Sequence record: MH221129.1
Reading direction: 5' to 3' (one strand)
DNA: 64,000 nt
The notes under the pieces are model-generated. The model searched no databases. It worked only from the letters and a program-made list of their open reading frames with translations, and was not told the origin of the DNA. Numbering within the stretch: position 1 is the stretch's first letter; each line of letters starts with the position of its first letter. Below, piece after piece: positions 12,965-39,420 of this stretch. The translations under genes and the position numbers were made by a program.

Positions 12965-13018
12965 GGTAAATACTCCTTAAGAGGTGATAGTCGAATGAGT
13001 AAGAGTTGATGGTCAACT

Positions 13019-13044
13019 CTCACCTAGGTAATATATATCTGAAA
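13019..13044 (-). promoter_or_regulatory. Early (virion RNAP-type) promoter TTTCAGATATATATTAC-CTAG-GTGAG
   Basis: Contains the phiKZ early-promoter core TATATTAC; 22 invariant positions shared with copies at 37946 and 39421. Confidence 0.8.
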
Positions 13045-13080
13045 TTAATTATAATCATACCGAGACAAAAAAAGAAGATA

Positions 13081-13102
13081 CCCTACTCCCGAAGGAGTAG
13101 GG
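13081..13102 (-). terminator. Terminator, 9-bp stem, UUCG loop
   Basis: CCCTACTCC-cgaa-GGAGTAGGG with A-tract at 13067-13073 on plus. Confidence 0.85.
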
Positions 13103-13113
13103 CACTGCTTATT

Positions 13114-13518
13114 TTATTTCCCAACCAAGCGGACGCCGTCGATTTCCTTTTCAGGAACGAGAGGCACGTAGTGTTTCTTGGTCTTATTCAGCATGAAGGA
13201 ACTGTGGTGATACTCAGCTTTCATTGAGAGATTGACCCGACGTTCGACGAAGGCGTCATCCAACACCATTTCCCCGAAATGGAGGGGCGTCTCAGCACCG
13301 GGATAATTCTTTTTCATGAAGCGCATATACCACCCACCCAAGGCACGGCCAACCATACTGCACTGCGCAGGATTCCCCGAATCGACACATGCCCTAAAAT
13401 ACTGGAATTCCATCTTGACAATTTCAGGATGCTGACGCAGCAACTTCTTACCTACAACAATGCTGATGCGTGGAGAAAGTACCACCATCGCTTTACTACA
13501 CTTGCGCGGTTTAAGCAT
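13114..13518 (-). CDS. Hypothetical protein, MLKPRK N-terminus
   Basis: Likely start ATG 13518 overlapping the stop of the upstream gene (GAAGATGCTTAA). Confidence 0.7.
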   Translation of the reverse strand: MLKPRKCSKAMVVLSPRISIVVGKKLLRQHPEIVKMEFQYFRACVDSGNPAQCSMVGRALGGWYMRFMKKNYPGAETPLHFGEMVLDDAFVERRVNLSMKAEYHHSSFMLNKTKKHYVPLVPEKEIDGVRLVGK

Positions 13519-13756
13519 CTTCTGGTGTCCCTTTAATGAAATTGCCCTGCTCATCGGCCAGTAAAATGTACCCAACACCTGTTGGCCGGAACGGCCTAGA
13601 TTGATCGACTACTTTCGCGGCGTTCAGACCGACTGAGAAACGATGAATACAGCCTAGGGATTTCTTACCACAGTAGACCATTCTGCTACGGTACGGATAG
13701 ACTGACCAATGACGAGAGACAACCACCTTCTTATTCTGTTTGCGCGGCTTAAGCAC
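13511..13756 (-). CDS. Small hypothetical protein, (M)LKPRK N-terminus
   Basis: GTG start at 13756 with AAGGAG RBS. Confidence 0.7.
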   Translation of the reverse strand: MLKPRKQNKKVVVSRHWSVYPYRSRMVYCGKKSLGCIHRFSVGLNAAKVVDQSRPFRPTGVGYILLADEQGNFIKGTPEDA

Positions 13757-13803
13757 TATTATTCTCCTTGTAGAGAGTTGCAAGAGTTATTGATGTTAAA
13801 TTC

Positions 13804-14538
13804 TTATTTCACTTCGGGATGTTCGGAAAGTGAGTCAAGAATAACTGGCTTATATCCAGATTCCGAACGACCTTTTACAATGTCGAGAAGCGTCGTCCCT
13901 TTTGGGGCTTCAGGCGTTGACACCAACATCATGTCAGAAACCGTCCGTGTGCAGCCTTCGGCACCCAGTTGCCATACCGCGTCAGGCGTGACAAGTTTGA
14001 TGTTAGGAAACTTCAAAGCAATCTCTTCCATCTTCGCTTTCAGTGCATCGCCATTCAACAACGGTACAGTTGGTGTCATGTACGCGAACTCGACATCGCG
14101 GTCGAGTACATAGTCACGCAGAAATTTCCGTGCTGTTACCGTGGCTGACACTTGCTCTTTGTTGACGTTAATCCCGATGTCGCTAAAATAGCCCAACGCA
14201 TCTAAAGCGTTATCGGACAATTTATAACGACGTGGTGCTGGGAACTTGCGCATGAAGTACAGCGTGTCACGACCCGGTACCCAACTCAGTACCCATTCCA
14301 TTTGGTTCAAACGGAACAAGTCCCGATAAATTTTCTTCTGCTGGAAATAATCGCCCTTATCTTGGTCGGGCGCATCCACCATTTCACGAAGATGCTTCGC
14401 GACTTTGACCATGGTGCCCCAGTCTACTTTGTAAACGTGCTTCTTGCCAATATAAGCGTTGGCGGCAATCGCGCGTGAAGAACGCGACTTGGTAATCTTA
14501 ACGACCTGGAGTCGTTTTTGTTTGCGTGGCTTTAACAT
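13804..14538 (-). CDS. Hypothetical protein (244 aa), MLKPRK N-terminus
   Basis: ORF track; TAAGGAG RBS. Confidence 0.8.
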   Translation of the reverse strand: MLKPRKQKRLQVVKITKSRSSRAIAANAYIGKKHVYKVDWGTMVKVAKHLREMVDAPDQDKGDYFQQKKIYRDLFRLNQMEWVLSWVPGRDTLYFMRKFPAPRRYKLSDNALDALGYFSDIGINVNKEQVSATVTARKFLRDYVLDRDVEFAYMTPTVPLLNGDALKAKMEEIALKFPNIKLVTPDAVWQLGAEGCTRTVSDMMLVSTPEAPKGTTLLDIVKGRSESGYKPVILDSLSEHPEVK

Positions 14539-14565
14539 GTAAATGCTCCTTAAGGGGGTATTGGG

Positions 14566-14898
14566 CTACGGTCTTACAGCTAACATTTTTCTCAGATCGG
14601 CGACATCGACCTTAACGAGGATAGGCGACGTAGAGATGTGTGCGGAACGGGGTTGCACTTTAAACGCACCAGGTGGAAAAGGTTTGTTAAAATCTTTTAT
14701 CTGGTCACGACGGCGCTTTTCCATTGCACGTTTGGCTAACGTCTTTTCTAAAGGTGTCCACTTCGATGCTAAACCGAGAATGATAACATCGACGATTAAC
14801 TGGTTCTCCTGATACTTAAACGTACCAATGAGCTTCTTACCTTTATAGAGTCGCGCGTGACCCTTCTGGAACACGATCGCCGTTCGTTTCGTTTTCAT
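14566..14898 (-). CDS. Basic hypothetical protein (110 aa)
   Basis: ORF track. Confidence 0.65.
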   Translation of the reverse strand: MKTKRTAIVFQKGHARLYKGKKLIGTFKYQENQLIVDVIILGLASKWTPLEKTLAKRAMEKRRRDQIKDFNKPFPPGAFKVQPRSAHISTSPILVKVDVADLRKMLAVRP

Positions 14899-15205
14899 TG
14901 CTCGTGGTTTCCTTGGTTAAAGGGAAATCAATAACAGGGCACTGCACGCAGTCAGGTGGCAACGAACCACCGCCCAAGATACGCATTATAGTTTCAATCT
15001 CGTGGCGGTCAGTCGGAGTTTGATTTTTGCGTAATAGGTCGAGAATTTGATGCCGTGGGAAATCTTCACGCAGCATATACTCAACCGTGGCAAGGTTGAA
15101 AATGCGTTCGCTTTCCATCTGACGATGGAATTCGTTTTGCACTTCACGCCACGCACGGTAACCTGGGAAATTATCTTTCCACCACTTTCGTATTTTAGAA
15201 ATCAT
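14843..15205 (-). CDS. Hypothetical protein (120 aa)
   Basis: ORF track; 4-bp overlap with upstream gene. Confidence 0.6.
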   Translation of the reverse strand: MISKIRKWWKDNFPGYRAWREVQNEFHRQMESERIFNLATVEYMLREDFPRHQILDLLRKNQTPTDRHEIETIMRILGGGSLPPDCVQCPVIDFPLTKETTSNENETNGDRVPEGSRATL

Positions 15206-15582
15206 TGGAACTCCATCATTCTGCCGGAAAGACCCGCGTAGTCGACAACAACAGTTTCACCTGTGCCTTCGAAACTGAACTTGATAACGCTACCGGTATT
15301 GTAAACCACTGTAACAGGCGCGACAGCAACACCCTGTTTCCGCAGATTTATACAGGCAGCCTGATACATTATCATCTCCAGCTTAACATCACTTCGGAAC
15401 AGACGCATTTCTGTTTGTTCTTCTGAAAAACGTTTGGTGATAACGAACAATAAAATCTCCCCGACCTCACAGGCACCATAGCCGCCTAGGATTGGTTTGA
15501 GAATGACTTCACTATCGCTATCGGGCGGATAGATAATGACTTCTTCTGGGACCACGTATTCCCGGTGGGTGTCTTCAGTCAT
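15202..15582 (-). CDS. Hypothetical protein (126 aa)
   Basis: ORF track; 4-bp overlaps at both ends. Confidence 0.7.
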   Translation of the reverse strand: MTEDTHREYVVPEEVIIYPPDSDSEVILKPILGGYGACEVGEILLFVITKRFSEEQTEMRLFRSDVKLEMIMYQAACINLRKQGVAVAPVTVVYNTGSVIKFSFEGTGETVVVDYAGLSGRMMEFQ

Positions 15583-15977
15583 TTTTTCACCTCGTAACCG
15601 TGACTACGAAAATACTCGACAGCCGCAGAACGTCTACCCGGATAAGAGAGTTTCTCGTAAAGCAGCTTTAAAAGGGCGTCTGGACTCCACCGCTGCTCTA
15701 AGAAATAAATCAGCGCTCCTAAGTTCCACCCTAGCATCTCTTCACGAATGTCTGCTTCTTTCTGGGCCTCCTTTAACTGTTCACTTAACTTACGATTCTC
15801 AGATTGCAGTTCTGAAAGCTGGCGTGTGAGTTTGCGTTGAGTTTCCAGCCCTTCGCGTATATGTTTCTCCCACACCTCTTTCGAAGCCCCTAACTCAATC
15901 TTTGAGATGCTTAATTCCAGCTCGAGGACATCCACCCGGTGACGTAGACGATTCCTCTCTCGGAACACTCCGAACAT
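15579..15977 (-). CDS. Coiled-coil hypothetical protein (132 aa)
   Basis: ORF track; heptad-like E/K/L-rich centre; GAGGAG RBS. Confidence 0.7.
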   Translation of the reverse strand: MFGVFRERNRLRHRVDVLELELSISKIELGASKEVWEKHIREGLETQRKLTRQLSELQSENRKLSEQLKEAQKEADIREEMLGWNLGALIYFLEQRWSPDALLKLLYEKLSYPGRRSAAVEYFRSHGYEVKK

Positions 15978-16042
15978 GCTTTCTCCTCGCTATTGCGTTG
16001 TCAATTCGATTACGTATTTCAGCTAAAGATAATGCTTTCCAT

Positions 16043-16363
16043 TCAGAACCCATTTCTCCCACCTTGTGCGATATACAAACCACACTGTGCATTTAACGAA
16101 GTAATGTTCGCAATCAGAATCATTACCCCGCCTAACGTGCGGGGCACTCTGGCCGCTTCGTAAACACGGTCCTGCGTACGGACACAATACTCATCGCCCA
16201 GAAAAGCAATTTCGTAATACTCTGCGCGCAACGGGATAAACGCCTGCAGCAGCCTATCAGCTGTCTGGTAGTCGTCCGTTAATTTCCCGCCCTCGAGTAA
16301 ATATTTTTGAATCTCGGCAATCGTCAGATTCTGCAACGAAGTAGACACCTGCTTCTCCTTCAT
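16043..16363 (-). CDS. Hypothetical protein (alternative GTG start 16348)
   Basis: ORF track; AAGGAG at 16355-16360 favours the GTG start. Confidence 0.7.
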   Translation of the reverse strand: MKEKQVSTSLQNLTIAEIQKYLLEGGKLTDDYQTADRLLQAFIPLRAEYYEIAFLGDEYCVRTQDRVYEAARVPRTLGGVMILIANITSLNAQCGLYIAQGGRNGF

Positions 16364-16706
16364 GGTCGATTAGTGATACTTTGGGATGGTCCTCGTAACG
16401 TAAGGACACTGCACGCTCCATAGCGCGATATAAGCGATTATAGATAACGTTGGGTAGGATACCGAAGTCAACACGACAGAGCATGACACGGTGCATCTTA
16501 GGATGGTAAAATTCACCGTGGTTAATAGCGAGTTCAACAAACCAAAGGCAAAGTTCCCTCGGGCCAGCCCGCGTGTAAATATCCATCACCGCATTGTCGA
16601 ATATTTTACCCGATACCGGTATGTCGCACTGCCTGAATTTCAGTTTCCGAACACCGACACGGCGCAGTTCCTCAGCGATTCCATCGAGGATGGTTCTTAT
16701 TGGCAT
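16257..16706 (-). CDS. Hypothetical protein (149 aa), long overlap with downstream gene
   Basis: ORF track. Confidence 0.55.
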   Translation of the reverse strand: MPIRTILDGIAEELRRVGVRKLKFRQCDIPVSGKIFDNAVMDIYTRAGPRELCLWFVELAINHGEFYHPKMHRVMLCRVDFGILPNVIYNRLYRAMERAVSLRYEDHPKVSLIDHEGEAGVYFVAESDDCRDSKIFTRGREINGRLPDS

Positions 16707-16735
16707 TTTGATTACTCTTGTGTTGTGGTAGCAGA

Positions 16736-17122
16736 TTAACGATTGTAGCCAGTGTACTCGTTAATGGTGCCATCTTTAATGTACATGCCTGGTTTAAGTG
16801 GTGCCGTACGGGGGTCCTTTTCTGAACGTTCGCCGTTACAGCATACGTTCCATTCATTTTCCAGGCGTTCCATTTCACGATAAGCGTACAAACGCACATC
16901 CACTACACGATCGTGCATTTGGCTTTTTGTTTCGCAATACACCGCGTGGTGTTCCAGCTGACTTATCTTCTTGAGAAGAACCTTGTTCAGTTCGATGGCG
17001 GCTTTGGCTATTAATGCATAGCCTTCCCGCTGTTGGTCGGTATCGGACTGCAGCATCGTTAGCTCATGATTTTTCATGTGCTCAATTGCCAATGCAGCTT
17101 CTTTCGATATCTTATCAGTCAT
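16736..17122 (-). CDS. Coiled-coil hypothetical protein (128 aa)
   Basis: ORF track. Confidence 0.7.
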   Translation of the reverse strand: MTDKISKEAALAIEHMKNHELTMLQSDTDQQREGYALIAKAAIELNKVLLKKISQLEHHAVYCETKSQMHDRVVDVRLYAYREMERLENEWNVCCNGERSEKDPRTAPLKPGMYIKDGTINEYTGYNR

Positions 17123-17406
17123 TTCTTAATCTCCGTAAGGTGATACAGACCAATGTTCTGGTCTTGTTCAATTTTAGCAATAAGTTCTTCAGTTAACTGG
17201 AGTTCCGGCGCAGTGTAAATGTGGCCACGACGGTTTAATTCCTGTTGACGCTTCACCACTTCCAGGGCGATGATAGAGGCGGGTGCCAGGTGTTCATTAC
17301 TGGCACGTAAAGCTTTAACCTCTTTCTTCAACTGTGTGTTTTCTTTGTGCAGCTCTTTTTGACGCTTGTTAATCAAGCCAAGTAACCAATCAATCATGGC
17401 CGCCAC
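17119..17406 (-). CDS. Coiled-coil hypothetical protein (95 aa)
   Basis: ORF track. Confidence 0.65.
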   Translation of the reverse strand: MAAMIDWLLGLINKRQKELHKENTQLKKEVKALRASNEHLAPASIIALEVVKRQQELNRRGHIYTAPELQLTEELIAKIEQDQNIGLYHLTEIKK

Positions 17407-17687
17407 TCCTTAAGACTATAACGCTTCGCCCAGACATGTTGTTTTTTGCAATCACGATCGTATATTTCACGAAGTCGTTTTAAGCAAGTAGCGTAGTAGT
17501 CGCGATTCTTTTCTTTCTCGTCAAGTTTATCAACCGTTTGATTGAGCAGTTCTAAATAACGATGCTGTCTTTTCAGACTCTCCATCATCTCGACGTTGAC
17601 GAACTTGCGCAGAGAAAGAGCTTCCTCTGCCTGCTTAACTGCATCGCGATACGGTTTATAAAGGCGTCTTAGTAGCCTGTCGAACAT
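17394..17687 (-). CDS. Coiled-coil hypothetical protein (97 aa)
   Basis: ORF track. Confidence 0.65.
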   Translation of the reverse strand: MFDRLLRRLYKPYRDAVKQAEEALSLRKFVNVEMMESLKRQHRYLELLNQTVDKLDEKEKNRDYYATCLKRLREIYDRDCKKQHVWAKRYSLKEWRP

Positions 17688-17697
17688 TTTCTATCCC

Positions 17698-18222
17698 TTA
17701 CCTTTTGATGTAGATAACGTTGCGGTTCTCAAACCGCGCACACGTCCAGGAAAATTCCCAGTAATGACGTGGTCGGTCAGCGATTCGCATGTCTACTTCT
17801 ATAATACCGTGGCTCTCCAGATTTACCTGGCGGAGGATATTTACGATGGTGTGAAGTTCACTGTGTGGACGATCGGCGATGGTTTCCAGATGTTGATTGA
17901 GTCTGGCTGGTGTTGCCACTGTGCGGATGTGCGTTCGCGTGTCGTCGTCATGCAAGAAAAGATACGACGGGGTGCGAGGCACATACCAGCGCCAGTCACC
18001 GACGTATGGTGCATTCTGATACTCGGACAATGCGCGCATGGCGTTCAATACCACGGAACAACGGAAATACCAAATATCCCACAGGTTGGGGGAGAAGAGT
18101 TCTGAAACTTTAACTTTCAGTGGGTCGATGGTAATTTCCCCTGACGCCAATACTTCCGAGGCTTGTTCAGACTGCAAAATATTGCGTTCCCGTTTGGTGT
18201 ACAGGTTCATTGTGATATCCAC
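17698..18222 (-). CDS. Hypothetical protein (174 aa)
   Basis: ORF track; TAAGGAG upstream. Confidence 0.7.
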   Translation of the reverse strand: MDITMNLYTKRERNILQSEQASEVLASGEITIDPLKVKVSELFSPNLWDIWYFRCSVVLNAMRALSEYQNAPYVGDWRWYVPRTPSYLFLHDDDTRTHIRTVATPARLNQHLETIADRPHSELHTIVNILRQVNLESHGIIEVDMRIADRPRHYWEFSWTCARFENRNVIYIKR

Positions 18223-18246
18223 TTAATACTCCTTAAGGTTTAATAG

Positions 18247-18609
18247 TTATTGTTTTGCCCAGTAATCGGCCAATTTTAGGTTGCCTTTGCCAATGCAAGC
18301 GTTGTTACCCATCTTAGCGATGCCGCGAAGGTGTACAGACGTCACCATTAACTTATCGGCTGTCTCTTCGGTAGGGTTAGCGACACACGCATCGAGAACG
18401 TTAATAAAAGCATCAAGCTCTTGTTGTGGAAACGGTCCATCGGGGTAACCGTGAATGGGGTATACCGCGAACTGACGCACACCGAGACTGTTAAGCTGAG
18501 ATACTACCGCATCAATATCTCGGTCAATCATTACAGTCCCATCGAAACGCATGGGTTTGGCAACACGTATGGTGATGTTGGGGTGTCGGCTGTTTTGAAC
18601 GTTTGTCAT
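18247..18609 (-). CDS. Early hypothetical protein (120 aa)
   Basis: ORF track; 4-bp overlap with upstream gene. Confidence 0.7.
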   Translation of the reverse strand: MTNVQNSRHPNITIRVAKPMRFDGTVMIDRDIDAVVSQLNSLGVRQFAVYPIHGYPDGPFPQQELDAFINVLDACVANPTEETADKLMVTSVHLRGIAKMGNNACIGKGNLKLADYWAKQ

Positions 18610-18974
18610 GCAGAATACCCTCGTTGGAAAATAACACCGGGTGCCGGTAACGGCTCGTTGTCCAGCGCAGACATGCGCAGTGATATCGCGTGCACCTTCT
18701 CAGCATTACGTACGGTGGATTCACGACGCAGTTCGCCCAACGCGACAGCAAACTGAGTAGACAAGATGCGGCTACCGTAGAAACCGCGATGTTTGATAGG
18801 CAACGGTTCAAAGCGTGCATCGATTCCGTTGGTGGCGTTCAGTTCTTCGATGGTTTCCATGATGCCCTGCTGCATCCGGATTTCGCTGTCACCATCGGCA
18901 TCGGTGGCAGTTTCAATAACCGCTACCTGATAGATTTTTTGAGTCATGGTAAATTCTCCTTTAGATATAGACAT
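18606..18974 (-). CDS. Early hypothetical protein (probable start MTQKIY)
   Basis: ORF track; AAGGAG precedes the internal Met; immediately follows promoter 19006..19031. Confidence 0.7.
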   Translation of the reverse strand: MSISKGEFTMTQKIYQVAVIETATDADGDSEIRMQQGIMETIEELNATNGIDARFEPLPIKHRGFYGSRILSTQFAVALGELRRESTVRNAEKVHAISLRMSALDNEPLPAPGVIFQRGYSA

Positions 18975-19005
18975 AGACTCTGGTGCTAACGTAAAAACTC
19001 AGAGA

Positions 19006-19031
19006 TTCACGTAGATAAAATCTATCTAAAA
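19006..19031 (-). promoter_or_regulatory. Early promoter variant TTTTAGATAGATTTTAT-CTAC-GTGAA
   Basis: Aligns without gaps to the 26-bp motif; directly downstream of terminator 19064. Confidence 0.65.
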
Positions 19032-19063
19032 CCAATTGGAATCCAGTACAAAGAAAAAAAAGA

Positions 19064-19083
19064 AAGAGCCCCGAAGGGCTCTT
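19064..19083 (-). terminator. Terminator, UUCG loop
   Basis: AAGAGCCC-cgaa-GGGCTCTT with A-tract on plus. Confidence 0.85.
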
Positions 19084-19086
19084 GTC

Positions 19087-22000
19087 TTACACCAGCTTGT
19101 CATCTGGTAGAACGTAGTTAATGTCAAGCGATGCGGTGGTGTGGTCAGGTACGGCTAAATCGTGGTAGAAGTCATACCCCACCCCGTGAGTTTTATAAAG
19201 CATGTACAAGCCTAAAGCTCGCATTGCTTCACCGGTGTAGAAACCGAAAGCTTGCCCGTTGTCGGTCGTTGGGTTCGCCCACGGCGACCACGCACCGTTG
19301 ATAGCCTTACCGGGAATGTCGGTGACAGTGAAGTTATCCCCCATCTCTTTCATTCCCATATCCATGATACGGTCTAACCCTTCCACGGTACAACCTGCCA
19401 TTGCCGCATAACAGCTCCCTGCAATCCACAAAGCACACATGTGAGCCGTAAAGTCGTTCTCTACCCAAACCGGTTTATTCGGTGCAGTAGGGAACTCGTT
19501 CGGGGTGTGGTTATTGAACTTGTCCAAAAACTGAACCAGCCATCTTGCCCACGTCTCAACATATGTTTGTAGCTTCTCAGGAACAGGTTTACCGCGCACT
19601 ACTAATTCATACCAGCACCGAGCAGCGGCGTTATACGCACGCGGCTGATACCCTGCCCATGGATGCCCGTCTCCCCAGTGGAAAGTTGTCCAGGTATCTG
19701 GGTCACCGTACGAATAGTTATCCCAACGGTTCCACACATACGCTGCGCAACCCGGTCCCAATTCCCCAATTTGCGTATTGTACGCGATTTGTGAATCGTA
19801 CATAAACGTAATCTGGTTATTGAACCATTCTGCGAAGCGATCGTCCTTGTGAATGGTGTACATGAACGGGTACTGATAGCCTGGATACGGCATCCCGTGC
19901 CACGCCCCTAACTGCGCTGCCCCTTCCGAATAGATATTCGAGAACGGAATCGTTCCTGGGCAATAAGCCAGTGAGTCCAGGCGGTAGTCTTTAACCGTAC
20001 AGTCGCCCACCAAACCTGTGTATGCTGAACTACCACGAATAACGATGCGGAACGTTAAGGTCCAACCATCATCCTTATCGAACACCGGTGGGATGTCGTT
20101 CAGGCAGTAATAACTGAAGTGCGCATTATCCACTGTAGAGTCGGGTAATATCGTCACCTGGTCAATCGTGGTGTAGTTAGGTGCTGATGGTTCCGGATCG
20201 GTGTCAGCGTGGTCCGGTTGATAACCAGATAGCGTCGCCTGGGCTGGGTCGATAATAACTTGTCGCCACTCTCCGTTCGTGGCAGGCAACATCCACCACC
20301 ATCGCCATTTGTCCGTGTCTTCAAAGCGGAAGTTAAAGTCCGCATCTGCTTTGTAAACAATAGACTCTGGCTTAGCAACACCCGCATCAGTCAACCAGAA
20401 ACCAATGATAAACCCTGCGTCATCGTCCGGAAACAATGCTTCAACCACCGTACCCGAACGACCATCATAAATCCCTTCCTCAAACTGCTCCTTCCAGGTA
20501 CATCCGCCGTAGTCAGAACAAGCACGCGCGTCCGCAATCACGTAATCGTCGTTCGTCGCCGGGTTAGTGATTCTCGCCAGCGAACGAAAATCAATATCGT
20601 ACTGTTCCACCGCTAACGATGCCGAACCGGGTAACGTACAGCCGTACCAATTGACCTCCTGCGTATCAGCTTTCACCGGGTTGATGTCCACCATCACTTT
20701 ACATGCTAAAGCGTCGCCGTTATCACAAACGCCGCCATACGTCACGCGTAGTTTCGAGTTGGTGTTGATACGGAAACGAATGGCTTGTTGTTCCATGAAG
20801 TGCTGGAGGGCTTCAGCCGACTTAAACACGATATCCCCATCGGCATTTCGACTATACTCAACCGTTCCAGTAGACGGGTAGTTATAGTCGTACGAAATAC
20901 CGTCCGTAAACGGCGTCTCCGCGAGTTTAGAGCGACGGAAGAACTTATCGGTGGCATCGATGTACGTATACTCGTGTGCGGTGTAGAAGACGCAATCAAG
21001 CGCTTTCTTGTAACGGTCTTCACCGGTGATACGCCACAACAGATAGCAGCAATCGATAAACCACACTTCGGCATCTGCCGCGTTCCCCATCTGGTTCACA
21101 GAACCTTTAAATGGCGTGTGGACGGGACGGTTATGCCAAGCCTCGTTACGAGCGAATTGATAGCCACCTTCCGCGACCGGAACCTGTGATGCGTAGTTCA
21201 CGAGATACACGCCGTTTATGGTGGTGTCCTTCAACTGCACAGTGCCTTTGTCGGCATCCGCAAACCCGGTGCCAATAATCTCGCCGTCCTGAATCTTGTT
21301 GCCTGTCCAAGCAATAATCCAGTCAGGTTCAAACAATGCCCCTTTACTTGCCGAACCACCCCAGATGGGCGTATAGCCGGACGGGTCACCTAACATCGTG
21401 TTCCAGTCTACCCACGCTTTTACATCGTACGGTTTCTCAGGATTGGTGATGAGGAAATCCGGCACTCGTGCCCAGTCTATTAACCCGTCTTCCGATTCCT
21501 TGATTTTCTGTACGTCAGCATTGACCGCACCCCACGTTGGATGGCCACGATGCGCAGAAAAGAACTTGTTCAGATATTCCCCAAAGAAAGGTGCCCCATG
21601 GGATATCTTACCGAGACCATTCGTAAACGTGATAGGAACACATTTATAGCCTCCGTGAGTTGGTTCGGTCGGGTGTACGGGATAGTCGGCCAGAACCGGT
21701 TCTTTACCGTTTACTAACCAGTTACAAATCCAACGCTGGGCAGTCTCAGGGATCGGCTGATTGGCGTAGTAGTACGTTACGTACGCTTCCCATGCCTTTA
21801 TTGCGGCATCAAGCCACATCTGATGCTTGGTTGCGATGTACATGTGGCAATAGCCGATAATCAACAGCGATTGCCCTTCGGTAGTCGCATCGCCATTAGG
21901 CTGGTACTCCGCCATCGTGTCCGCAATAAAATGACGATTGTTCGACAACACCCCTTCCGGATTAATTAAGTAGTGATCGTTGTGAGCATCGTTTGTTTGA

Positions 22001-22095
22001 CCGGTGTTACGTCGCACAAAGTCCTGGTGGCCGTAAGCCAGTTGCATCGCGTAGTTTAACGCATGGCGACCCGCGGCAATCTTAAACTTCATCAT
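19087..22095 (-). CDS. GH8-like (alpha/alpha)6 glycoside hydrolase with large internal insertion, probable virion-associated polysaccharide hydrolase (1002 aa)
   Basis: ATTEGQSL and GNAADAEVWF...LWRITGEDRY resemble the catalytic segments of GH8 endoglucanase BcsZ (TTSEGQSY; NSASDGDVWM...LWKEQRY). Confidence 0.6.
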   Translation of the reverse strand: MMKFKIAAGRHALNYAMQLAYGHQDFVRRNTGQTNDAHNDHYLINPEGVLSNNRHFIADTMAEYQPNGDATTEGQSLLIIGYCHMYIATKHQMWLDAAIKAWEAYVTYYYANQPIPETAQRWICNWLVNGKEPVLADYPVHPTEPTHGGYKCVPITFTNGLGKISHGAPFFGEYLNKFFSAHRGHPTWGAVNADVQKIKESEDGLIDWARVPDFLITNPEKPYDVKAWVDWNTMLGDPSGYTPIWGGSASKGALFEPDWIIAWTGNKIQDGEIIGTGFADADKGTVQLKDTTINGVYLVNYASQVPVAEGGYQFARNEAWHNRPVHTPFKGSVNQMGNAADAEVWFIDCCYLLWRITGEDRYKKALDCVFYTAHEYTYIDATDKFFRRSKLAETPFTDGISYDYNYPSTGTVEYSRNADGDIVFKSAEALQHFMEQQAIRFRINTNSKLRVTYGGVCDNGDALACKVMVDINPVKADTQEVNWYGCTLPGSASLAVEQYDIDFRSLARITNPATNDDYVIADARACSDYGGCTWKEQFEEGIYDGRSGTVVEALFPDDDAGFIIGFWLTDAGVAKPESIVYKADADFNFRFEDTDKWRWWWMLPATNGEWRQVIIDPAQATLSGYQPDHADTDPEPSAPNYTTIDQVTILPDSTVDNAHFSYYCLNDIPPVFDKDDGWTLTFRIVIRGSSAYTGLVGDCTVKDYRLDSLAYCPGTIPFSNIYSEGAAQLGAWHGMPYPGYQYPFMYTIHKDDRFAEWFNNQITFMYDSQIAYNTQIGELGPGCAAYVWNRWDNYSYGDPDTWTTFHWGDGHPWAGYQPRAYNAAARCWYELVVRGKPVPEKLQTYVETWARWLVQFLDKFNNHTPNEFPTAPNKPVWVENDFTAHMCALWIAGSCYAAMAGCTVEGLDRIMDMGMKEMGDNFTVTDIPGKAINGAWSPWANPTTDNGQAFGFYTGEAMRALGLYMLYKTHGVGYDFYHDLAVPDHTTASLDINYVLPDDKLV

Positions 22096-30843: not shown

Positions 30844-30869
30844 ATCAACAAAATAACATCTATCTGAAA
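30844..30869 (-). promoter_or_regulatory. Early promoter variant TTTCAGATAGATGTTAT
   Basis: 17-bp core matches the motif; downstream GTGA absent. Confidence 0.55.
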
Positions 30870-31509: not shown

Positions 31510-31576
31510 GTTCTTAATTCCTCATTCAATTGTGTGGTTTTCACATATATTTACGTTGGGATGTAAAAAAGAAGTT

Positions 31577-31600: not shown

Positions 31601-31606
31601 TAAACC

Positions 31607-34038: not shown

Positions 34039-34047
34039 GGTTGTACC

Positions 34048-34866
34048 TTATAAGGTGCCGATAAGTTCTCCGACCGACTTACGTTTACTGGCGTCAGCAC
34101 TCATATACCGCCCGACCTGAATCTCACGCCATTTAAATCCGTAATAGATGTCCCGCGTCAACAACGTATCAGCGTTAGACAACACGACCTTGTTCCCATC
34201 AGCAGCTTGTTGCAAGAGAAGTTTCGCCAACTCGCGATGGTCAGCTTGTGAAAATTCTTTTTTGTGGTATTGTGCGTGCTTCGACGTATCCGATAACGGA
34301 ATGTACGGCGGATCAGCGTAGATAACCGAATTCGACGGGCAGTTATTTAACACCTGTCGGAAATCAGCACACAGTAGTTCAACATTGGCTTCTGAGCAAC
34401 GCTTTGCCCATGCCAGGATTTCTTCCTCTGGGAAATAAACCCCGTTTGGGTGCGCGCCGTACGGCACATTGAAACCGCCTGACTGGTTATAACGACACAG
34501 GCCATTATACCCGTGCCGGGTTAAGTACAGAAACGTCGCCGCATCCTTAAGGTTGGGTTTACCCGTCACGCCACGACTGTTAAACTCGTCGCGACGCTCC
34601 ATGTACTTGCAGCGATTTTCACCATCCTTAAACATCGCCTTCGCTTCTACTATCAGTGCTTCTGGCCTGTCCCGCGCTATCGTTAACAGCCCAATCAAAT
34701 CTGGATTGGTGTCTGACAATATATAGTTCGGGTACGTGGTGTTTAAGAATACTGAGCCTGCCCCAACGAATGGTTCGACGAAGTAATCTGCCTCAGGCAA
34801 CACTTTCAACAGCTCAGGCAGCACCCTCGTCTTTCCACCCATCCATTTTAAAATTGGTCGTATCAC
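34048..34866 (-). CDS. dam: DNA adenine methyltransferase, Dam family
   Basis: LKWMGGK, FVEPFVGAGSVF (motif I), YNGLCRYN..G.FNVPYG, IYADPPY (motif IV). Confidence 0.95.
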   Translation of the reverse strand: MIRPILKWMGGKTRVLPELLKVLPEADYFVEPFVGAGSVFLNTTYPNYILSDTNPDLIGLLTIARDRPEALIVEAKAMFKDGENRCKYMERRDEFNSRGVTGKPNLKDAATFLYLTRHGYNGLCRYNQSGGFNVPYGAHPNGVYFPEEEILAWAKRCSEANVELLCADFRQVLNNCPSNSVIYADPPYIPLSDTSKHAQYHKKEFSQADHRELAKLLLQQAADGNKVVLSNADTLLTRDIYYGFKWREIQVGRYMSADASKRKSVGELIGTL

Positions 34867-34869
34867 CCG

Positions 34870-35871
34870 TTATCCTCTCAATCCCAGTAAAAAAGCCTTA
34901 GCCGGTGTGGATGGCGCTGGATTCGCAGGTTCATGCACCGTAGGTTTTTCGCGTAGGGTAAGTTCTACACGATTACCTTTTGCTTTCTTCCAGCTAACCA
35001 GTTCGTTGTTCCGTTTTAACACCATGCTGCGCACAACTTGCGTACAACGCAGAATGTCGCCGTAGAGGTGATTGGCCGCTTCGTTGTTTGCACCTGTCTC
35101 GATGTAGACCGTATCGCTGTGACGTTGGGCGAAATCAAACAGTGCACCGATTAAACGACGACCGATGCCTTTACGCTGATGTGTGTACTTAACCGCTACG
35201 CCACTCAACATCACCACGCCTTTACTCACCAGACGCATTTGGGCAACACCCACGATTTCTTTACCGTCGCGCCACACCACCGTTTCCACATTTGCGTGTG
35301 AGATACGATTAACCATAGTGTCTGCAATAGGACTGGTATAAAGATAGTGACCACGGACGTCTTGACTAAGTTCTTCATAGATGCCACCTGCGACTAACTC
35401 ACGTACGCGTTCTCTATCTGCAATGGGAAGCTCTGGAAAGCGTTCGCCGCTGATGTACTGGATTTCTGACGCGGTAATGACACCGTCAAACAACCGCGAT
35501 GAGCACGACCACATTAAATCAGCAAGTTCAAAACCACGACTGATAAGTTGCTTCTCGACCTCATCGTTAGGAGCAGGACAGGACATGAATTCAAAACCGG
35601 TGTGGTCAAGAATCAATGCCAGGCCAACTGCATCTAACGCCCCCGCTTCAAACTCTTCAAAATAGTGACAGGTCAGTGTCGGGTCGCCGTGTTGATACGT
35701 TGCAACTAAGTACCCCACCCAACGTGCTTGCGCGTTGCGAACTACGTACACAGAGTAGGAAGGGTCTTTCAGATACTTACTCAACCGGTCTGCACGTGCA
35801 CCCGTACCAACGAAATTAGCAAAATCATCAGTCCGGATATCGGCACGGAATAATCTGCCCACTGTTCTCAT
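34870..35871 (-). CDS. Tandem GNAT acetyltransferase (333 aa), C-terminal domain intact
   Basis: VAVKYTHQRKGIGRRL (motif A) and NNEAANHLY (motif B); N-domain ends LISRGF. Confidence 0.8.
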   Translation of the reverse strand: MRTVGRLFRADIRTDDFANFVGTGARADRLSKYLKDPSYSVYVVRNAQARWVGYLVATYQHGDPTLTCHYFEEFEAGALDAVGLALILDHTGFEFMSCPAPNDEVEKQLISRGFELADLMWSCSSRLFDGVITASEIQYISGERFPELPIADRERVRELVAGGIYEELSQDVRGHYLYTSPIADTMVNRISHANVETVVWRDGKEIVGVAQMRLVSKGVVMLSGVAVKYTHQRKGIGRRLIGALFDFAQRHSDTVYIETGANNEAANHLYGDILRCTQVVRSMVLKRNNELVSWKKAKGNRVELTLREKPTVHEPANPAPSTPAKAFLLGLRG

Positions 35872-35936
35872 TGTAATTCCCTCAAAAAGGTATTGCTGTC
35901 ACATCATGAGTCAAAAGTGTAAAAAGACAAAAAAAG

Positions 35937-35958
35937 TAAGGGAGCAAAAGCTCCCTTA
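35937..35958 (-). terminator. Terminator, 9-bp stem
   Basis: TAAGGGAGC-aaaa-GCTCCCTTA with A-tract on plus. Confidence 0.75.
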
Positions 35959-35964
35959 TCTTAC

Positions 35965-36624
35965 TTACAGAGTGAGGCGTGGTGGGTTATTTCCGTCATA
36001 CAGGCCACGAGATGCGGCGTGGGCGAAAGAGTTATACATCTTCGCAAAGTTATCGAGATGTGTACGTACTTCCGGGTCTTCGAGATTACCCACAACAACA
36101 TTCCCGGCGGCACCGAGTAAGAAATAACCGAAGTTCTCACCATCGGTAAAGTTGATGTCGGTGGTAACCGGATGAACCATCGTTGCATTCGGCAGAATGT
36201 TACCGATAAGTCCTGCCGCACGAATGAGGTGACCCGCTTCTTTCTCTTCGCCATTCAAGAACGAGCGCAGGGCTGCGACTGCAATCAATGGATAGATGTT
36301 CACCCGGCTTTCTGTGCTACGTAACACGCCGATGACTTTACCGTGAGTCTGAATCGAGAACGACCAAAGTTCCGCGCCGCAGTGGATGGAAAACTTCAGC
36401 CACGGGGCTGGTGTGATCGTGATGACTTCTTCGCCCGGTTCGATGAGATAATCCTGCTCAACACGAATCTGTTTCATGCGGGCAGCGAAGTTGGCGGCCA
36501 GATCTTCGGGTAAAGCTGAGGGTTGTGGTACGTTCACTTTGTCTGCCTCTTTTTTGTTGGCGGGATTTGTACCGATGGTGGTACGTCTGTCTCGGACGGG
36601 TGTCGTACGTGGTGCTTTTGCCAT
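35965..36624 (-). CDS. Hypothetical protein (219 aa)
   Basis: ORF track; TAAGGAG RBS. Confidence 0.8.
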   Translation of the reverse strand: MAKAPRTTPVRDRRTTIGTNPANKKEADKVNVPQPSALPEDLAANFAARMKQIRVEQDYLIEPGEEVITITPAPWLKFSIHCGAELWSFSIQTHGKVIGVLRSTESRVNIYPLIAVAALRSFLNGEEKEAGHLIRAAGLIGNILPNATMVHPVTTDINFTDGENFGYFLLGAAGNVVVGNLEDPEVRTHLDNFAKMYNSFAHAASRGLYDGNNPPRLTL

Positions 36625-36651
36625 AGTGTATACTCCTTACGTGGTGCTTAC

Positions 36652-37059
36652 TTAATAGTCTCTGTGTTCTGGGAATTCTCGTTCGCAAGCGATGCGGTCA
36701 TTCTCTACACGGTTCAGATGTGCCGGAAGAGACACACAGTTGTTACAAATACACAATTCTTTATCGCCTTGACGGGCGTCAAAGTCGTACCATTTCCAGC
36801 CGACGGTGTCGCGCTTCGGGAAAGTTCCTTTGCAGTCATCACAGATGACTTCTTCCGCTGCTATTTCAGCTTGTAACTTTTCCCAGCACGCTTCGCACAT
36901 GTAGTACGTTTCACGACCCCATGGGTCACATTCCGCTGTATAGCGTGTGGCCACAGACCCCACCTTGAGGTGCTTACAACGCTCGTCGTCTTCTTTCATC
37001 ACACGACGCGTGATACCATTAACAAACCAGTTCATAATGGGTCTCCTAGTGAACCACAA
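36652..37059 (-). CDS. Multi-CxxC zinc-finger protein
   Basis: CKH, CEAC, CDDC, CNNC. Confidence 0.7.
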   Translation of the reverse strand: MWFTRRPIMNWFVNGITRRVMKEDDERCKHLKVGSVATRYTAECDPWGRETYYMCEACWEKLQAEIAAEEVICDDCKGTFPKRDTVGWKWYDFDARQGDKELCICNNCVSLPAHLNRVENDRIACEREFPEHRDY

Positions 37060-37417
37060 CGGAAGGCTTACGGTTCACCACAGAAAGGCGACCAGTCTCT
37101 CCTTGACGGATAGGGCAGTTCTTCATGTAGTCCACGCCCGATTCCATCTTGAAGACGTATCTGCATTTACCGTTACGGGATTGGTACTCAACCGTATAGG
37201 TTAAACGCAATGTATCCGCTACACGCATCAGTGTTTCGATGGTGACGTTCTTTTCACGTTCGTTTTTGATTGCTGAAATCTGGGAAGCTGAACAGCCCAC
37301 CAGTTGCGCAATCTCTTTTTGGGTTACGTCAATCTCGGTAATTCTTTTAATAATAAAAGACAGACGAACCAAGAAAGCTTTCTTAGCCAACACAACAGCA
37401 GCATGTTTGAAACGCAT
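37046..37417 (-). CDS. XRE/HigA-like helix-turn-helix protein
   Basis: TQKEIAQLVGCSASQISAIKN...VTIETLMRVADTL. Confidence 0.85.
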   Translation of the reverse strand: MRFKHAAVVLAKKAFLVRLSFIIKRITEIDVTQKEIAQLVGCSASQISAIKNEREKNVTIETLMRVADTLRLTYTVEYQSRNGKCRYVFKMESGVDYMKNCPIRQGETGRLSVVNRKPSVVVH

Positions 37418-37444
37418 GATAATACTCCTTTAGTTAATAGTCGA

Positions 37445-37897
37445 TTAGTTCAATGGTTCTAAAACGTATATGGGGAAGAAGATACCGAGGCTTGTCTTGT
37501 GGCCACGACGTATCATCCACGCCGGTAAGATTTTCTCCGGAAGCATCACACCTGGTGTGGCAAAATGCACACACGACGGATTATCGTCTGGGTCTGACCA
37601 ATATTCCCAGGTGCCGACAGTGTTACATTTAACTTTGAAAATGCGTGACAAATCACGCACAGCCACCTGATCCCAACTAACGACCACTTTCTTCTTGTCG
37701 CCGTATTCCAACAGGTAGTCGTGAATCGGCATTTTATCGAAGTGGTTGAATGGTACCGCGTTGCGCAACGGCTTAAGATAACGACGACACCACAACCGTA
37801 GTCTGATACTGCGAATAATGCCGCTCAAGTCAGGGAAGTATGTTTCACGAACCACTTGAGCCTCTGGAAAGGTGGGCCGTACAGGTTTATTTGACAT
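37445..37897 (-). CDS. Early hypothetical protein (150 aa)
   Basis: ORF track; first gene after promoter 37946..37971. Confidence 0.8.
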   Translation of the reverse strand: MSNKPVRPTFPEAQVVRETYFPDLSGIIRSIRLRLWCRRYLKPLRNAVPFNHFDKMPIHDYLLEYGDKKKVVVSWDQVAVRDLSRIFKVKCNTVGTWEYWSDPDDNPSCVHFATPGVMLPEKILPAWMIRRGHKTSLGIFFPIYVLEPLN

Positions 37898-37945
37898 CTT
37901 AATACTCCTTACGAAAATGGTCGATTAGGCGTTTTGTTATCAACG

Positions 37946-37971
37946 CTCACTTAAGTAATATATATCTGAAA
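37946..37971 (-). promoter_or_regulatory. Early promoter TTTCAGATATATATTAC-TTAA-GTGAG
   Basis: Exact copy of the invariant positions. Confidence 0.8.
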
Positions 37972-38012
37972 TCATTTTGCATAGGACTAGTTCGAAGTGT
38001 AAAAAATGAAAG

Positions 38013-38036
38013 CCCCCTTACCCGAAGGTAAGGGGG
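38013..38036 (-). terminator. Terminator, 10-bp stem, UUCG loop
   Basis: CCCCCTTACC-cgaa-GGTAAGGGGG. Confidence 0.85.
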
Positions 38037-38041
38037 TACTA

Positions 38042-38665
38042 CTAGGCGGCGAGAATCTGTTCAACGATTCTGGCGGCGACCAAAGCCATATCGTCATTTG
38101 CGCTCACGTTCATCAGCTTGAACTTGTCACCACCTTCGGTAATGATGTGATGCGCGAAACGATACTGGTCGCGTAAGGCGTCCCAGGAGCGACTGTCGCG
38201 CAGATACTTCGCGGTTAATACTTCGTCATCCCAGTTCTTGCCCTGGGCCTCTACGCGCTTCCTGAAGCGTTCTGTGGCACTTTCGAAGTCGATGTCCATT
38301 GCAACGTACAATTGCGGAGCATTAGGATGGTCTGCGACCTTGGAACGGAAGACTTCACCTTTGCCATCAACGCCCTGATAGACAACAGTGGATGGACAGA
38401 AACGGTCGAAGATAACCACGTCGTATTCAGGGACAACATTCTCGAGGGTGTGTAAGAAGTCTTCACACATCGCCTCGGCAATCCGTGCATTAGAAGCAGA
38501 CTGCACAACTAACGACCGTGCGCGAATCCCTGCTTCTGTGGTGTTCGTTGGATGGTTAACCACCACGGCGTTGATCCCTGCGCAACGTAGCATTTCCAAC
38601 ACCAGTTTAGCCAGTGTGCTTTTGCCTGCGAAGTCAGGTGCGTCGAACGACACCGATTTTAACAT
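38042..38665 (-). CDS. tmk: Thymidylate kinase
   Basis: P-loop DAPDFAGKST, HP, VIFDRFCPSTVVYQG. Confidence 0.85.
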   Translation of the reverse strand: MLKSVSFDAPDFAGKSTLAKLVLEMLRCAGINAVVVNHPTNTTEAGIRARSLVVQSASNARIAEAMCEDFLHTLENVVPEYDVVIFDRFCPSTVVYQGVDGKGEVFRSKVADHPNAPQLYVAMDIDFESATERFRKRVEAQGKNWDDEVLTAKYLRDSRSWDALRDQYRFAHHIITEGGDKFKLMNVSANDDMALVAARIVEQILAA

Positions 38666-38732
38666 GATAATACCCCAAGTAGTTTGTTAATAGCTGCTAT
38701 TCACATTATAACTATTTGGCGTAAACAAAAAA

Positions 38733-38760
38733 AAACAAGTGCCCCGAGAGACACTTGTTT
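38733..38760 (-). terminator. Probable terminator
   Basis: AAACAAGTG...CACTTGTTT with A-tract on plus. Confidence 0.65.
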
Positions 38761-38764
38761 TCGT

Positions 38765-39379
38765 TTACTTCACGAGCAGTATCTGCTCACCTGCCACACG
38801 CACTTCTTCCCAACCTTGATGCCTGGCGGCCGCAGCAACTAAATCAACACAGTTTCTATCAGCAATCCAACCCTGGCAAACATCTCGAATGAAATCAGGT
38901 TGGAGCACAACCAGTGGAGCTGCTTCTGAAACGCATTCTGGTGCGGGGAGACGAGCAATATCCACCATGTGACGTAGCTTGTGATGCTCGAGATTAAAGC
39001 GATAATAGAGTGTTTCTGTGTGGCTATCGCCATTCTCTTCAGTTATGGTAATATTAATCGCGAGGCCGGAACGAGGATGTTCTTCGTTATCAACTCTGTA
39101 CGTCGATGCACTCAGAACATAGCTAAAGTATTTTATACCTATTGCGAAGTCGAAATCTTCTTCAAGTATCTCCGTATACAGTTTACTTATTTCGCGGGTG
39201 CATGGCCTTTCATCGTAATAATCATCCCCTTCGAAGGGGGCGTACTGTGCATCAGGCCGAAGATTATTAAAAATCCAGTTTGGGAGACGCTGGCGAAATG
39301 CCTCGGCAATCTTGGCACGCTCATAACCGTCAGTCATGGTGGATAAGGAGACTGCTGCCTCTACAATATCATTAATCAT
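38765..39379 (-). CDS. Monocistronic early hypothetical protein (204 aa)
   Basis: ORF between promoter 39421 and terminator 38733. Confidence 0.8.
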   Translation of the reverse strand: MINDIVEAAVSLSTMTDGYERAKIAEAFRQRLPNWIFNNLRPDAQYAPFEGDDYYDERPCTREISKLYTEILEEDFDFAIGIKYFSYVLSASTYRVDNEEHPRSGLAINITITEENGDSHTETLYYRFNLEHHKLRHMVDIARLPAPECVSEAAPLVVLQPDFIRDVCQGWIADRNCVDLVAAAARHQGWEEVRVAGEQILLVK

Positions 39380-39420
39380 AATAGATTCCTTAATGGTCGA
39401 TTAGAAGTATGGGTCGTAAT

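Follow-up and report, generated by a model that had tools for sequence, protein, structure and literature searches.

To our knowledge, gene expression in the phiKZ-like, nucleus-forming jumbo phages is understood at the promoter level only, and the reviews known to us treat middle and late signals as not predictable from sequence. The promoters of the non-virion RNA polymerases carry TATG at the start of transcription in phiKZ and AACA-N6-T-A/G in AR9. For translational control, the T4 RegA targets, as well as the T4 gp43 and gp32 operators and the Mu Com site, offer a short shared sequence in the ribosome-binding region, and the element described below is likened to these operators. Conserved motifs have been reported in both the early and late 5′ UTRs of AR9, with their function left open (Lavysh et al. 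2017, PMC5312081, Fig. S3).

The window analysed here is the first 64 kb (64,000 nucleotides) of the Salmonella jumbo phage SPAsTU (Seoulvirus; SPN3US/phiKZ-like), which encodes its own RNA polymerases. AR9 (PMC5312081) and SPAsTU are alike in being jumbo phages with two multisubunit RNA polymerases and a conserved early 5′-UTR motif, whereas AR9 belongs to another phage lineage, with a Bacillus host and uracil DNA. A sequence-only reading of the window had reported five minus-strand copies of a short leader motif, and all of them, four exact and one variant (TCATTCGACTA), were confirmed (Table 1). The list itself turned out to be incomplete: the element, referred to below as the box, comprises 10–13 bases and is wider than first noted, with the coding-strand consensus t-A-(A/T)-Y-C-G-A-C-Y-A-T-(T/C)-A, and its relaxed core [TC]CGAC[CT]AT adjoins the Shine-Dalgarno (SD) sequence in approximately 16 SPAsTU gene leaders, always on the sense strand. 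The earlier estimate that about 0.06 exact copies would be expected by chance stood against four CTAATCGACYA matches in the window, a number reached by 0/100 shuffles, and the motif is non-random; the whole SPAsTU genome contained six exact and five one-mismatch copies.

In the 40 nt upstream of start codons, the sense-strand counts for SPAsTU and three relatives were 15 (SPAsTU), 12, 11, and 9 versus approximately 0.7–1.0 expected, and the antisense counts were 0, 1, 0, and 2, giving 47 sense versus 3 antisense copies. All of the approximately 45 leader copies in these four genomes were located on the sense strand 14–23 nt before the start codon and 0–10 nt before the SD sequence, which is the position expected of an RNA translation-initiation element (sense strand, less than ~35 nt upstream of the start codon, SD adjoining). 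The 2–9 nt spacing first noted for the five copies in the window was reproduced (2, 7, 7, 2, and 9 nt to AAGGA(G/A)). No earlier description of the box was found in the papers searched, no Rfam 15 family matched the whole window or genome positions 200001–220000 at the gathering score, and the complementarity of the box to 16S, 23S, and 5S rRNA was no better than that of shuffled boxes.

Table 1 Box-bearing leaders of the SPAsTU window and their neighbouring features
Feature	Position	Strand	Remarks
Leader box variant TCATTCGACTA	12988..12998	-	9 nt upstream of AAGGAG, gene 12536..12964
Leader box CTAATCGACCA	16363..16373	-	2 nt upstream of AAGGAG, gene 16043..16348 (GTG start)
Leader box CTAATCGACTA	37438..37448	-	Precedes XRE/HTH gene; 7 nt from AAGGAG
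Leader box CTAATCGACCA	37918..37928	-	Leader of early promoter 37955-37971, upstream of gene 37445..37897; 7 nt to SD
Leader box CTAATCGACCA	39394..39404	-	Leader of early promoter 39430-39446; 2 nt upstream of AAGGAA, gene 38765..39379
SD TAAGGAG	12973..12979	-	Gene 12536..12964
SD AAGGAG	16355..16360	-	Gene 16043..16348
SD AAAGGAG	37425..37431	-	HTH gene
SD TAAGGAG	37905..37911	-	Gene 37445..37897
SD TAAGGAA	39386..39392	-	Gene 38765..39379
Box-bearing early gene	12536..12964	-	142 aa, no known function
Box-bearing gene	16043..16348	-	101 aa, no known function
XRE-type HTH protein gene	37046..37417	-	Pfam HTH_3, E 1.8e-7; box-bearing
Gene	37445..37897	-	150 aa, no known function; SPAsTU only, between early promoter and HTH gene
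Box-bearing early gene	38765..39379	-	204 aa, no known function
Class I early (virion RNA polymerase type) promoter core TTTCAGATATATATTAC	13028..13044	-	Predicted transcription start ~13021
Class I early promoter core TTTCAGATATATATTAC	37955..37971	-	Predicted transcription start ~37948
Class I early promoter core TTTCAGATATATATTAC	39430..39446	-	
5′-terminal hairpin of early transcript	12999..13023	-	11 bp, -14 kcal/mol; box directly after
5′-terminal hairpin of early transcript	37929..37946	-	GCGUU/AACGC, -5.9 kcal/mol; one C, then box
Intrinsic terminator of upstream operon	13067..13102	-	Just before Class I promoter
Intrinsic terminator	38001..38036	-	Before Class I promoter
Terminator-type hairpin	39461..39480	-	Before Class I promoter

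The genes carrying the box are small early-type genes without known function, the HTH gene, and an HD-domain gene; no structural or late gene is preceded by it. In SPAsTU, 10 of the 16 boxes belong to operon-first genes, with two to three more in this position ancestrally; such placement of most boxes is also the pattern expected of a promoter. Only a minority of the early genes inside operons carry the box, which is thus not a general requirement for translation.

In the relatives SPN3US, pEa_SNUABM_29 (pEa29), and Asesino, the box was retained at 28 of 31 orthologous leaders (9/11, 11/11, and 8/9 in the pairwise comparisons), in front of orthologous proteins with identities down to 38%. Identical 6-mers were retained at 77–84% in the box, 52–61% in the SD sequence, and 13–35% in the flanks. 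Because it is better conserved across these phages than the SD sequence and is set before the SD sequences of approximately 16 early genes, the box is a genuine, undescribed control signal, which most likely acts at the level of the mRNA and not as an operator on the DNA. Selection on the box extends over three genera, and in Machinavirus a variant fused to the SD sequence, GACT(A/T)TCGAGGA, was found in seven leaders. Moreover, the box travels with the ribosome-binding region, independently of the promoter; the MLTRNHKRA gene is boxed everywhere, although what lies ahead of it differs: in SPN3US an early promoter, in SPAsTU another gene, and in both pEa29 and Asesino a terminator.

Conserved leaders of this kind could also arise if the box had no function and were the conserved joint of leader cassettes (box, SD, and ATG) spread by recombination or gene conversion, like the T4-type promoter/stem-loop cassettes. 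Identical leaders of 33–37 nt are found in front of non-homologous genes (12964, 139781, and, nearly identical, 68821), a tandem box occurs at 132607/132622, and the SPAsTU-specific genes 37445..37897 and 68387..68821 each form an insertion that separates a promoter from a conserved gene, with two flanking copies of box and SD; at the second of these sites, pEa29 and Asesino carry different cargo. Gene 37445..37897 is, in this respect, like a cassette insertion, and the arrangement is similar to the PeSL cassettes of T4-type phages, where repeated terminator/promoter/leader units flank variable small early genes and lineage-specific genes are inserted between the repeats. The flanking repeat in SPAsTU, however, is the box-SD leader, which is under selection beyond recombination: the box-SD spacers and the hairpins have diverged, but the box has not (footprint 0.8 versus 0.2–0.35), it has been kept across genera in which the orthologous proteins are 38–60% identical, and its conservation exceeds that of the SD sequence. 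Recombination at the box may follow from its conservation rather than cause it, and a functionless joint appears improbable.

Three of the five copies in the window had been assigned to the leaders of early promoters, and indeed three identical 17-mers, TTTCAGATATATATTAC, are located there, with the box approximately 26–28 nt downstream of each. These 17-mers fit the description of a virion RNA polymerase early promoter (AT-rich, ~10+ nt, centre near −10), and the transcription start was placed by the rule of 6 nt after the AT-rich consensus, as given in the source reports (PMC5312081, PMC7598289). The perfect Class I promoters of the four genomes are followed by a 5′ hairpin, the box, and the SD sequence, in this order, in 22 of 23 cases, and in these 22 leaders the box occupies roughly +24 to +36 relative to the predicted start. 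Alignment A1 was invariant at the GA of GTGAG and at A..GAC.AT. A covarying hairpin just 5′ of the box was detected in 21 of 22 leaders (mean z −4.2), and the predicted unpaired probability of the box, ~0.7–0.9 in most leaders, points to an accessible sequence. Inclusion of the box in the virion RNA polymerase promoter itself was rejected, since it is located 26–33 nt downstream of TTTCAGATATATATTAC and also occurs without a promoter, both behind terminators and in internal leaders 500–850 bp from any promoter.

Such copies raise the question of a second promoter. The non-virion phage RNA polymerase might recognise the box as a ‘middle’-class promoter, or as the core of one, which would keep the operons transcribed after the virion polymerase phase. 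Several boxes directly follow a terminator at sites where no other promoter can be recognised (SPAsTU 211805 and its three orthologues, SPAsTU 139811, pEa29 67644, and Asesino 67312 and 58152), and the box is the only enriched intergenic motif apart from the SD sequence, terminators, and Class I/II promoters. Its approximately 16 copies per genome resemble the number of phiKZ middle promoters. Known promoters of non-virion polymerases are short and overlap the start of transcription (PMC7598289), and the location of one just downstream of an early promoter is described for AR9 and phiKZ (PMC5312081, PMC8244752): continuous expression in AR9 comes from late promoters in tandem with early ones and from further late promoters within early operons (PMC5312081), and phiKZ gene 054 is transcribed from a primary start of the early class and a secondary start of the middle class (PMC8244752). 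The box shares with these promoters its shortness, its directionality, and its location downstream of early promoters and inside early operons, but its sequence is unrelated to theirs, and its 14–23-nt distance to the start codon at all of the approximately 45 sites differs from the AR9 and phiKZ leaders of 20 to several hundred nt (PMC5312081, PMC8244752). At 16363, 39394, 132622, and all Machinavirus sites, the box-SD gap is only 0–2 nt, so the transcript would have to begin inside the box to keep its SD sequence; the Machinavirus fusion leaves almost no space for a start between the two. Rather than replication or structural operons with leaders of variable length, as expected of a middle or late promoter, early-type genes follow the box, two copies of which can recur ~800 nt apart within one operon, and the box 8-mer is not avoided on the sense strand within genes. 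Many terminators lead directly to an SD sequence and a gene with neither box nor known promoter, so a box behind a terminator need not imply a promoter. On balance, we regard a middle promoter as unlikely.

The sequence-only reading had preferred an operator on the DNA to which a dimeric protein binds, with the XRE/HTH protein encoded at 37046..37417 as a possible candidate that would autoregulate its gene; bound downstream of the early promoters, such a protein would block elongation, that of its own gene included. The HTH_3 gene behind one copy was verified and is the only HTH regulator; each of the four Seoulvirus/Erskinevirus genomes has the box in front of it, and in three of them (SPN3US, pEa29, and Asesino) no other gene separates it from an early promoter, a setting in which the +24 to +36 position would suit a roadblock. 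The near-palindrome was correct for five of the six pairs of TAATCGACYATTA, and a 13-bp near-palindrome beside an XRE-type gene recalls the Cro/CI-type operators of XRE-family HTH dimers. The asymmetric pair, however, is invariant: position 5 is C, and position 9 is Y, never the G required by symmetry (0/56). Conservation is complete in the central CGAC and 50–85% in the arms, the reverse of an operator with two conserved half-sites and a weaker centre, and in Machinavirus the SD sequence replaces the right arm. Neither free orientation nor placement over or next to promoters was found; the orientation relative to the gene is fixed (47:3), the copies are tied to the SD sequence, which a roadblock does not need, and some occur far from promoters or behind terminators. 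Additionally, the leader of the Huxley HTH gene is without the box although the protein is conserved. The dimeric operator is therefore unsupported, and we consider it very doubtful.

The same reading had also raised an RNA element that controls translation or serves in processing, and this option fits the position, strand, and promoter independence better than an operator does. Judging from the sequence comparisons, we tentatively favour, as the leading explanation with nearly an even chance, a cis-acting 5′-UTR RNA element (operator or enhancer) of the immediate-early mRNAs of Seoulvirus and Erskinevirus, with a sister form in Machinavirus. The injected virion RNA polymerase would start ~6 nt after the AT-rich promoter, and the transcript would open with a stable 5′-terminal hairpin, probably protecting the 5′ end, followed by the single-stranded box and, 0–8 nt further on, the SD sequence. 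With its position about −14 to −30 relative to the start codon, the box would lie within the 30S binding region or at its border, so a putative sequence-specific factor bound there would set ribosome loading. This factor could be an early or virion protein of the phage or a host protein, and its action may be that of an enhancer or, as with T4 RegA, that of a common repressor by which the early set is shut off.

Like the T4-type translational operators, the box belongs to a set of phage mRNAs co-expressed in time, is on the sense strand, and is within reach of the 30S subunit, but RegA sites overlap the AUG and are poorly conserved, whereas the box is upstream of the SD sequence and better conserved than it. 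The lambda nut sites (boxA and boxB hairpin) similarly combine a hairpin and a linear box in an early operon leader; in the present leaders, however, the hairpin comes first, the box also occurs without it, and the host polymerase is not used for the box genes.

With the box, the early leaders of SPN3US-type phages have a second sequence-specific signal, which marks a small regulon of approximately 16 genes, mostly of unknown function. SPN3US, with its amber mutants, serves as a genetic model in which the box can be tested directly. If the box is an RNA operator, a putative early translational regulator is implied; if it is a promoter, it would show which sequence the non-virion polymerase recognises in this clade. 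A broader proposal, that the box is either an address label carried by immediate-early mRNAs in the nucleus-forming enterobacterial jumbo phages or the long-missing middle promoter of the second phage RNA polymerase, seems to us somewhat unlikely even with both options taken together. A putative virion-delivered or first-made protein recognising the label would act at the ribosome, turning the entire set of immediate-early genes on or off, or, alternatively, would hand transcripts from the injected-genome compartment to ribosomes. Either option, if true, would give Chimalliviridae gene expression its first post-initiation control point defined by sequence. In annotation, the box can be used to flag immediate-early genes and their real start codons, and the promoter, 5′ hairpin, box, and SD sequence together are a candidate portable expression module for phage engineering.

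Individual copies in the window also touch neighbouring reading frames. The TAA of box 37438..37448 is the stop codon of the upstream gene 37445..37897. The box at 16363..16373, which has no promoter nearby, was retained in SPN3US and lost in pEa29 and Asesino, and the TAA inside it could end a small unannotated ORF, 16370..16540.

The window matches, base for base, positions 1-64000 of the 250,739-bp genome of Salmonella phage SPAsTU (MH221129.1; genus Seoulvirus), an SPN3US-like relative of phiKZ. The recurring 11-mer CTAATCGACYA noticed in the sequence-only reading was recovered as four exact minus-strand copies in the window against 0.06 expected, its variant form was also confirmed, and AAGGA(G/A) was located 2-9 nt downstream of every one of these five sites. 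The complete genome contains 6 exact and 5 one-mismatch copies, of which 9 are minus-strand. Over all sites, the extended consensus reads t-A-(A/T)-Y-C-G-A-C-Y-A-T-(T/C)-A (hereafter, the box), and its end lies 14-23 nt from the start codon. Approximately 16 SPAsTU leaders carry the relaxed core [TC]CGAC[CT]AT followed by a Shine-Dalgarno (SD) sequence and a start codon. Within 40 nt upstream of the starts, taken from heuristic gene calls made in this analysis, the sense-strand count of this core was 15 versus ≈ 1 expected from the coding-sequence density of the 8-mer, and the antisense count was 0. Among enriched intergenic 7-mers, the box was the sole signal apart from the SD, terminators and two promoter classes. 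Among the genes with a box are those for small proteins without an assigned function, for an XRE-type HTH protein and for an HD-domain protein; none is structural.

In phiKZ-type phages, the early genes are transcribed by a virion RNA polymerase, the middle and late ones by a non-virion polymerase. A conserved AT-rich element centred at about -10 marks the early promoters, and transcription starts ~6 nt downstream (PMC7598289; PMC5312081). The three window sites previously called perfect early promoters proved to be identical 17-mers, TTTCAGATATATATTAC, with a terminator ahead of each, and match this description. Two promoter classes were distinguished, Class I being perfect AGATATATATTAC followed by yTAGGTGAG and Class II being AGATAGATATTATC; both the classes and the transcription starts are predictions based on likeness to phiKZ and AR9. 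The only match in a search of RNA sequencing runs was a wastewater metatranscriptome, as contigs, with 5% of the words. Class I promoters with a gene within 75 nt (n = 23; SPAsTU, pEa_SNUABM_29 (pEa29), SPN3US and Erwinia phage Asesino) provided a leader set picked independently of the box, which was present in 22 of the 23, and the invariant columns of the leader alignment were the GA of GTGAG and A..GAC.AT. Folding predicted a 5′-terminal hairpin between the presumed start and the box in 21 of 22 leaders (mean -7.8 kcal/mol, z -4.2). Successive positions of the stem covary (AU/CG, UA/GC/AU, AU/GU/UA), and the box lies 2-6 nt 3′ of the hairpin and is predicted to be unpaired. For these results each leader was folded separately and the pairs were tabulated; RNAalifold, applied to the MAFFT leader alignment, returned no structure, the stems being misaligned. 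Among Class II leaders, the box occurs in about 2 of 11. One of these two leaders, which is highly conserved, belongs to the gene for a 544-aa protein, and here 3 nt separate the predicted 5′ end from the start of the box. A second promoter class was also located in the window as AGATAGAT(A/G/T)TTAT, usually without the 5′ hairpin and box, and one copy lies upstream of a gene for a 1002-aa structural protein.

Two other interpretations of these leaders were rejected. A leaderless upstream ORF, opening with the GTG at +1 and closing with the TAA in the box or SD, showed, on inspection, inconsistent frames among leaders, and the arms of a mini-hairpin UAAU/AUUA with the loop CGACY did not covary (e.g., CATT...ATCA, TAAC...ATCA).

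Orthologues of the SPAsTU box genes were found by tblastn without use of the motif, and the box was kept at 9 of 11 orthologous leaders in pEa29, 11 of 11 in SPN3US and 8 of 9 in Asesino, at protein identities down to 38%. In a footprint of 31 leader pairs, identical 6-mers were retained at 77-84% in the box, 52-61% in the SD and 13-35% in the hairpin and spacer. The Machinavirus phage Huxley has a counterpart, (T/A)(T/A/C)GACT(A/T)TCGAGGA, fused to the SD in seven leaders, and in five of these a Class I promoter and hairpin lie upstream; Klebsiella phage Miami and Erwinia phage Joad have a different early promoter consensus, and no similar leader architecture was found in them. Identical 33-37-nt leaders (box, spacer, SD and ATG) stand on unrelated genes, which suggests that leaders are exchanged as cassettes or by gene conversion. 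Such leaders, together with cassette-like insertions bordered by box and SD, hint that the box could be purely a recombination relic, but this explanation, which we consider improbable, does not account for the fact that the box alone resists divergence.

The box travels with the ribosome-binding region and not with the promoter. Five boxes are operon-internal, and others stand immediately behind terminators, one of these (at 211805) together with its orthologues. The box of a 47-aa gene product starting with MLTRNHKRA is kept in all four genomes, with a Class I promoter upstream of the gene in SPN3US, a terminator in pEa29 and Asesino, and another gene in SPAsTU. The HTH gene is the first after the promoter in three genomes (SPN3US, pEa29 and Asesino). 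The fourth, SPAsTU, has an inserted 150-aa gene ahead of it, and both genes carry the box and SD. The genome-wide terminator finder was too permissive (~300 matches), and only individual clear terminators were used, the aggregate counts being discarded.

In the strongest rival explanation, the non-virion polymerase would use the box as its promoter: AR9 and phiKZ position such promoters just downstream of early promoters and within early operons, some boxes behind terminators have no other promoter, and the majority of boxes are at operon starts. However, the distance from box to start codon is constant and short, certain sites leave only 0-2 nt between box and SD, late genes have no upstream box, and many terminators lead directly to an SD with no box between, so that a promoter role appears possible but doubtful.

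The fixed orientation, invariant asymmetric centre, tight SD coupling and promoter independence point to a box read directionally with the ribosome-binding site, i.e., on the mRNA. Given these features and the position of the box at about -14 to -30, we therefore tentatively favour, as a reading somewhat short of probable, that the box serves the immediate-early mRNAs as a shared operator or enhancer of translation. A putative factor bound at the box would control 30S loading, and the 5′ hairpin would stabilise the immediate-early mRNA; the factor, the sign of its effect and the transcription start are all presumptive. The alternative preferred in the sequence-only reading, a DNA operator for a dimeric HTH protein, was prompted by a near-palindrome that is indeed present in the consensus, yet symmetry, orientation and placement all stand against it, and this role is quite unlikely.

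By analogy, the translational element proposed here would resemble phage translational operators in function, and the box resembles the AR9 tandem promoters in arrangement. AR9 also has unexplained 5′-UTR motifs (PMC5312081). The published accounts consulted deal with jumbo-phage promoters and these AR9 motifs; none of them treated Seoulvirus leaders or contained a description of the box, and Rfam gave no family match in the window or in genome 200001-220000.

Several other identities were rejected. Pairing with E. coli 16S/23S/5S rRNA gave best runs of 7-9 nt (G-U allowed) versus typically 9-10 nt for shuffled boxes, and the match at 16S 1524-1532 falls in helix 45, on the wrong side of the anti-SD. 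The likeness to the T7 promoter (TAAT-CGACT-AT versus TAATACGACTCACTATA) was treated as coincidence; a search for a T7-type polymerase (PF00940) gave no match in the SPAsTU genome, but as it gave none in the control genomes either, this negative carries little weight. An IHF-like site had two mismatches in nine specified positions and no further support.

Coordinates of boxes, leaders and neighbouring features (SPAsTU numbering unless stated)
Feature	Position	Strand
Class I promoters in the window	13028-13044, 37955-37971, 39430-39446	-
Variant box	12988-12998	
Operon-internal boxes	16363, 37438, 68374, 78205, 155611	
Boxes immediately behind terminators	211805, 139811	
HTH gene	37046..37417	-
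Inserted 150-aa gene	37445..37897	
Identical leaders on unrelated genes	12962-12998, 139779-139813, 68819-68850	
Stretch without annotated gene	16349-16735	
56-codon ORF	16370..16540	-
Tandem boxes	132607-132632	-
Tandem boxes, pEa29	129843-129866	
Second promoter class	19015-19027, 30853-30865, 59537-59549, 61324-61336	-
Structural protein gene (1002 aa)	19087..22095	
GTGAAAA(A/C)(A/C)CAC leaders	31540-31570, 46670-46700	-
Promoter-hairpin-terminator unit	213880-213970	-
Orthologous units	pEa29 212202, SPN3US 165687	
Conserved ~90-nt leader	204420-204517	-

Additional observations concern individual leaders. One stretch of 387 nt has no annotated gene, and an ORF scan of it revealed a 56-codon ORF whose TAA stop is the TAA within the box; in the matching region, the SPN3US annotation has a longer overlapping gene, gp136. 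In SPAsTU and pEa29, tandem boxes lie 15 nt apart, the second sitting between SD and ATG, so that the start codon takes its AT from this box; only the first box is present in SPN3US and Asesino.

The motif GTGAAAA(A/C)(A/C)CAC, common to two post-terminator leaders ~25-30 nt before the SD, is possibly a further promoter-type motif. Positional enrichment, used to look for a TATG late promoter of the phiKZ kind, gave no peak and was uninformative. Elsewhere in the genome, an intrinsic terminator lies ~55 nt downstream of a perfect Class I promoter and its 5′ hairpin, and no gene intervenes; this unit, conserved in three Seoulvirus genomes and with no Rfam match, may give rise to a short early RNA or act as an attenuator ahead of the next gene. 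Finally, a promoter-like AAATAGATTTTATC precedes a ~90-nt leader with the blocks GGGCAC, GTCCGCGCCG and CGGAAAAGTATAAAT, which is conserved in five of five genomes of three genera; it also had no Rfam match and is possibly a structured leader or small RNA.
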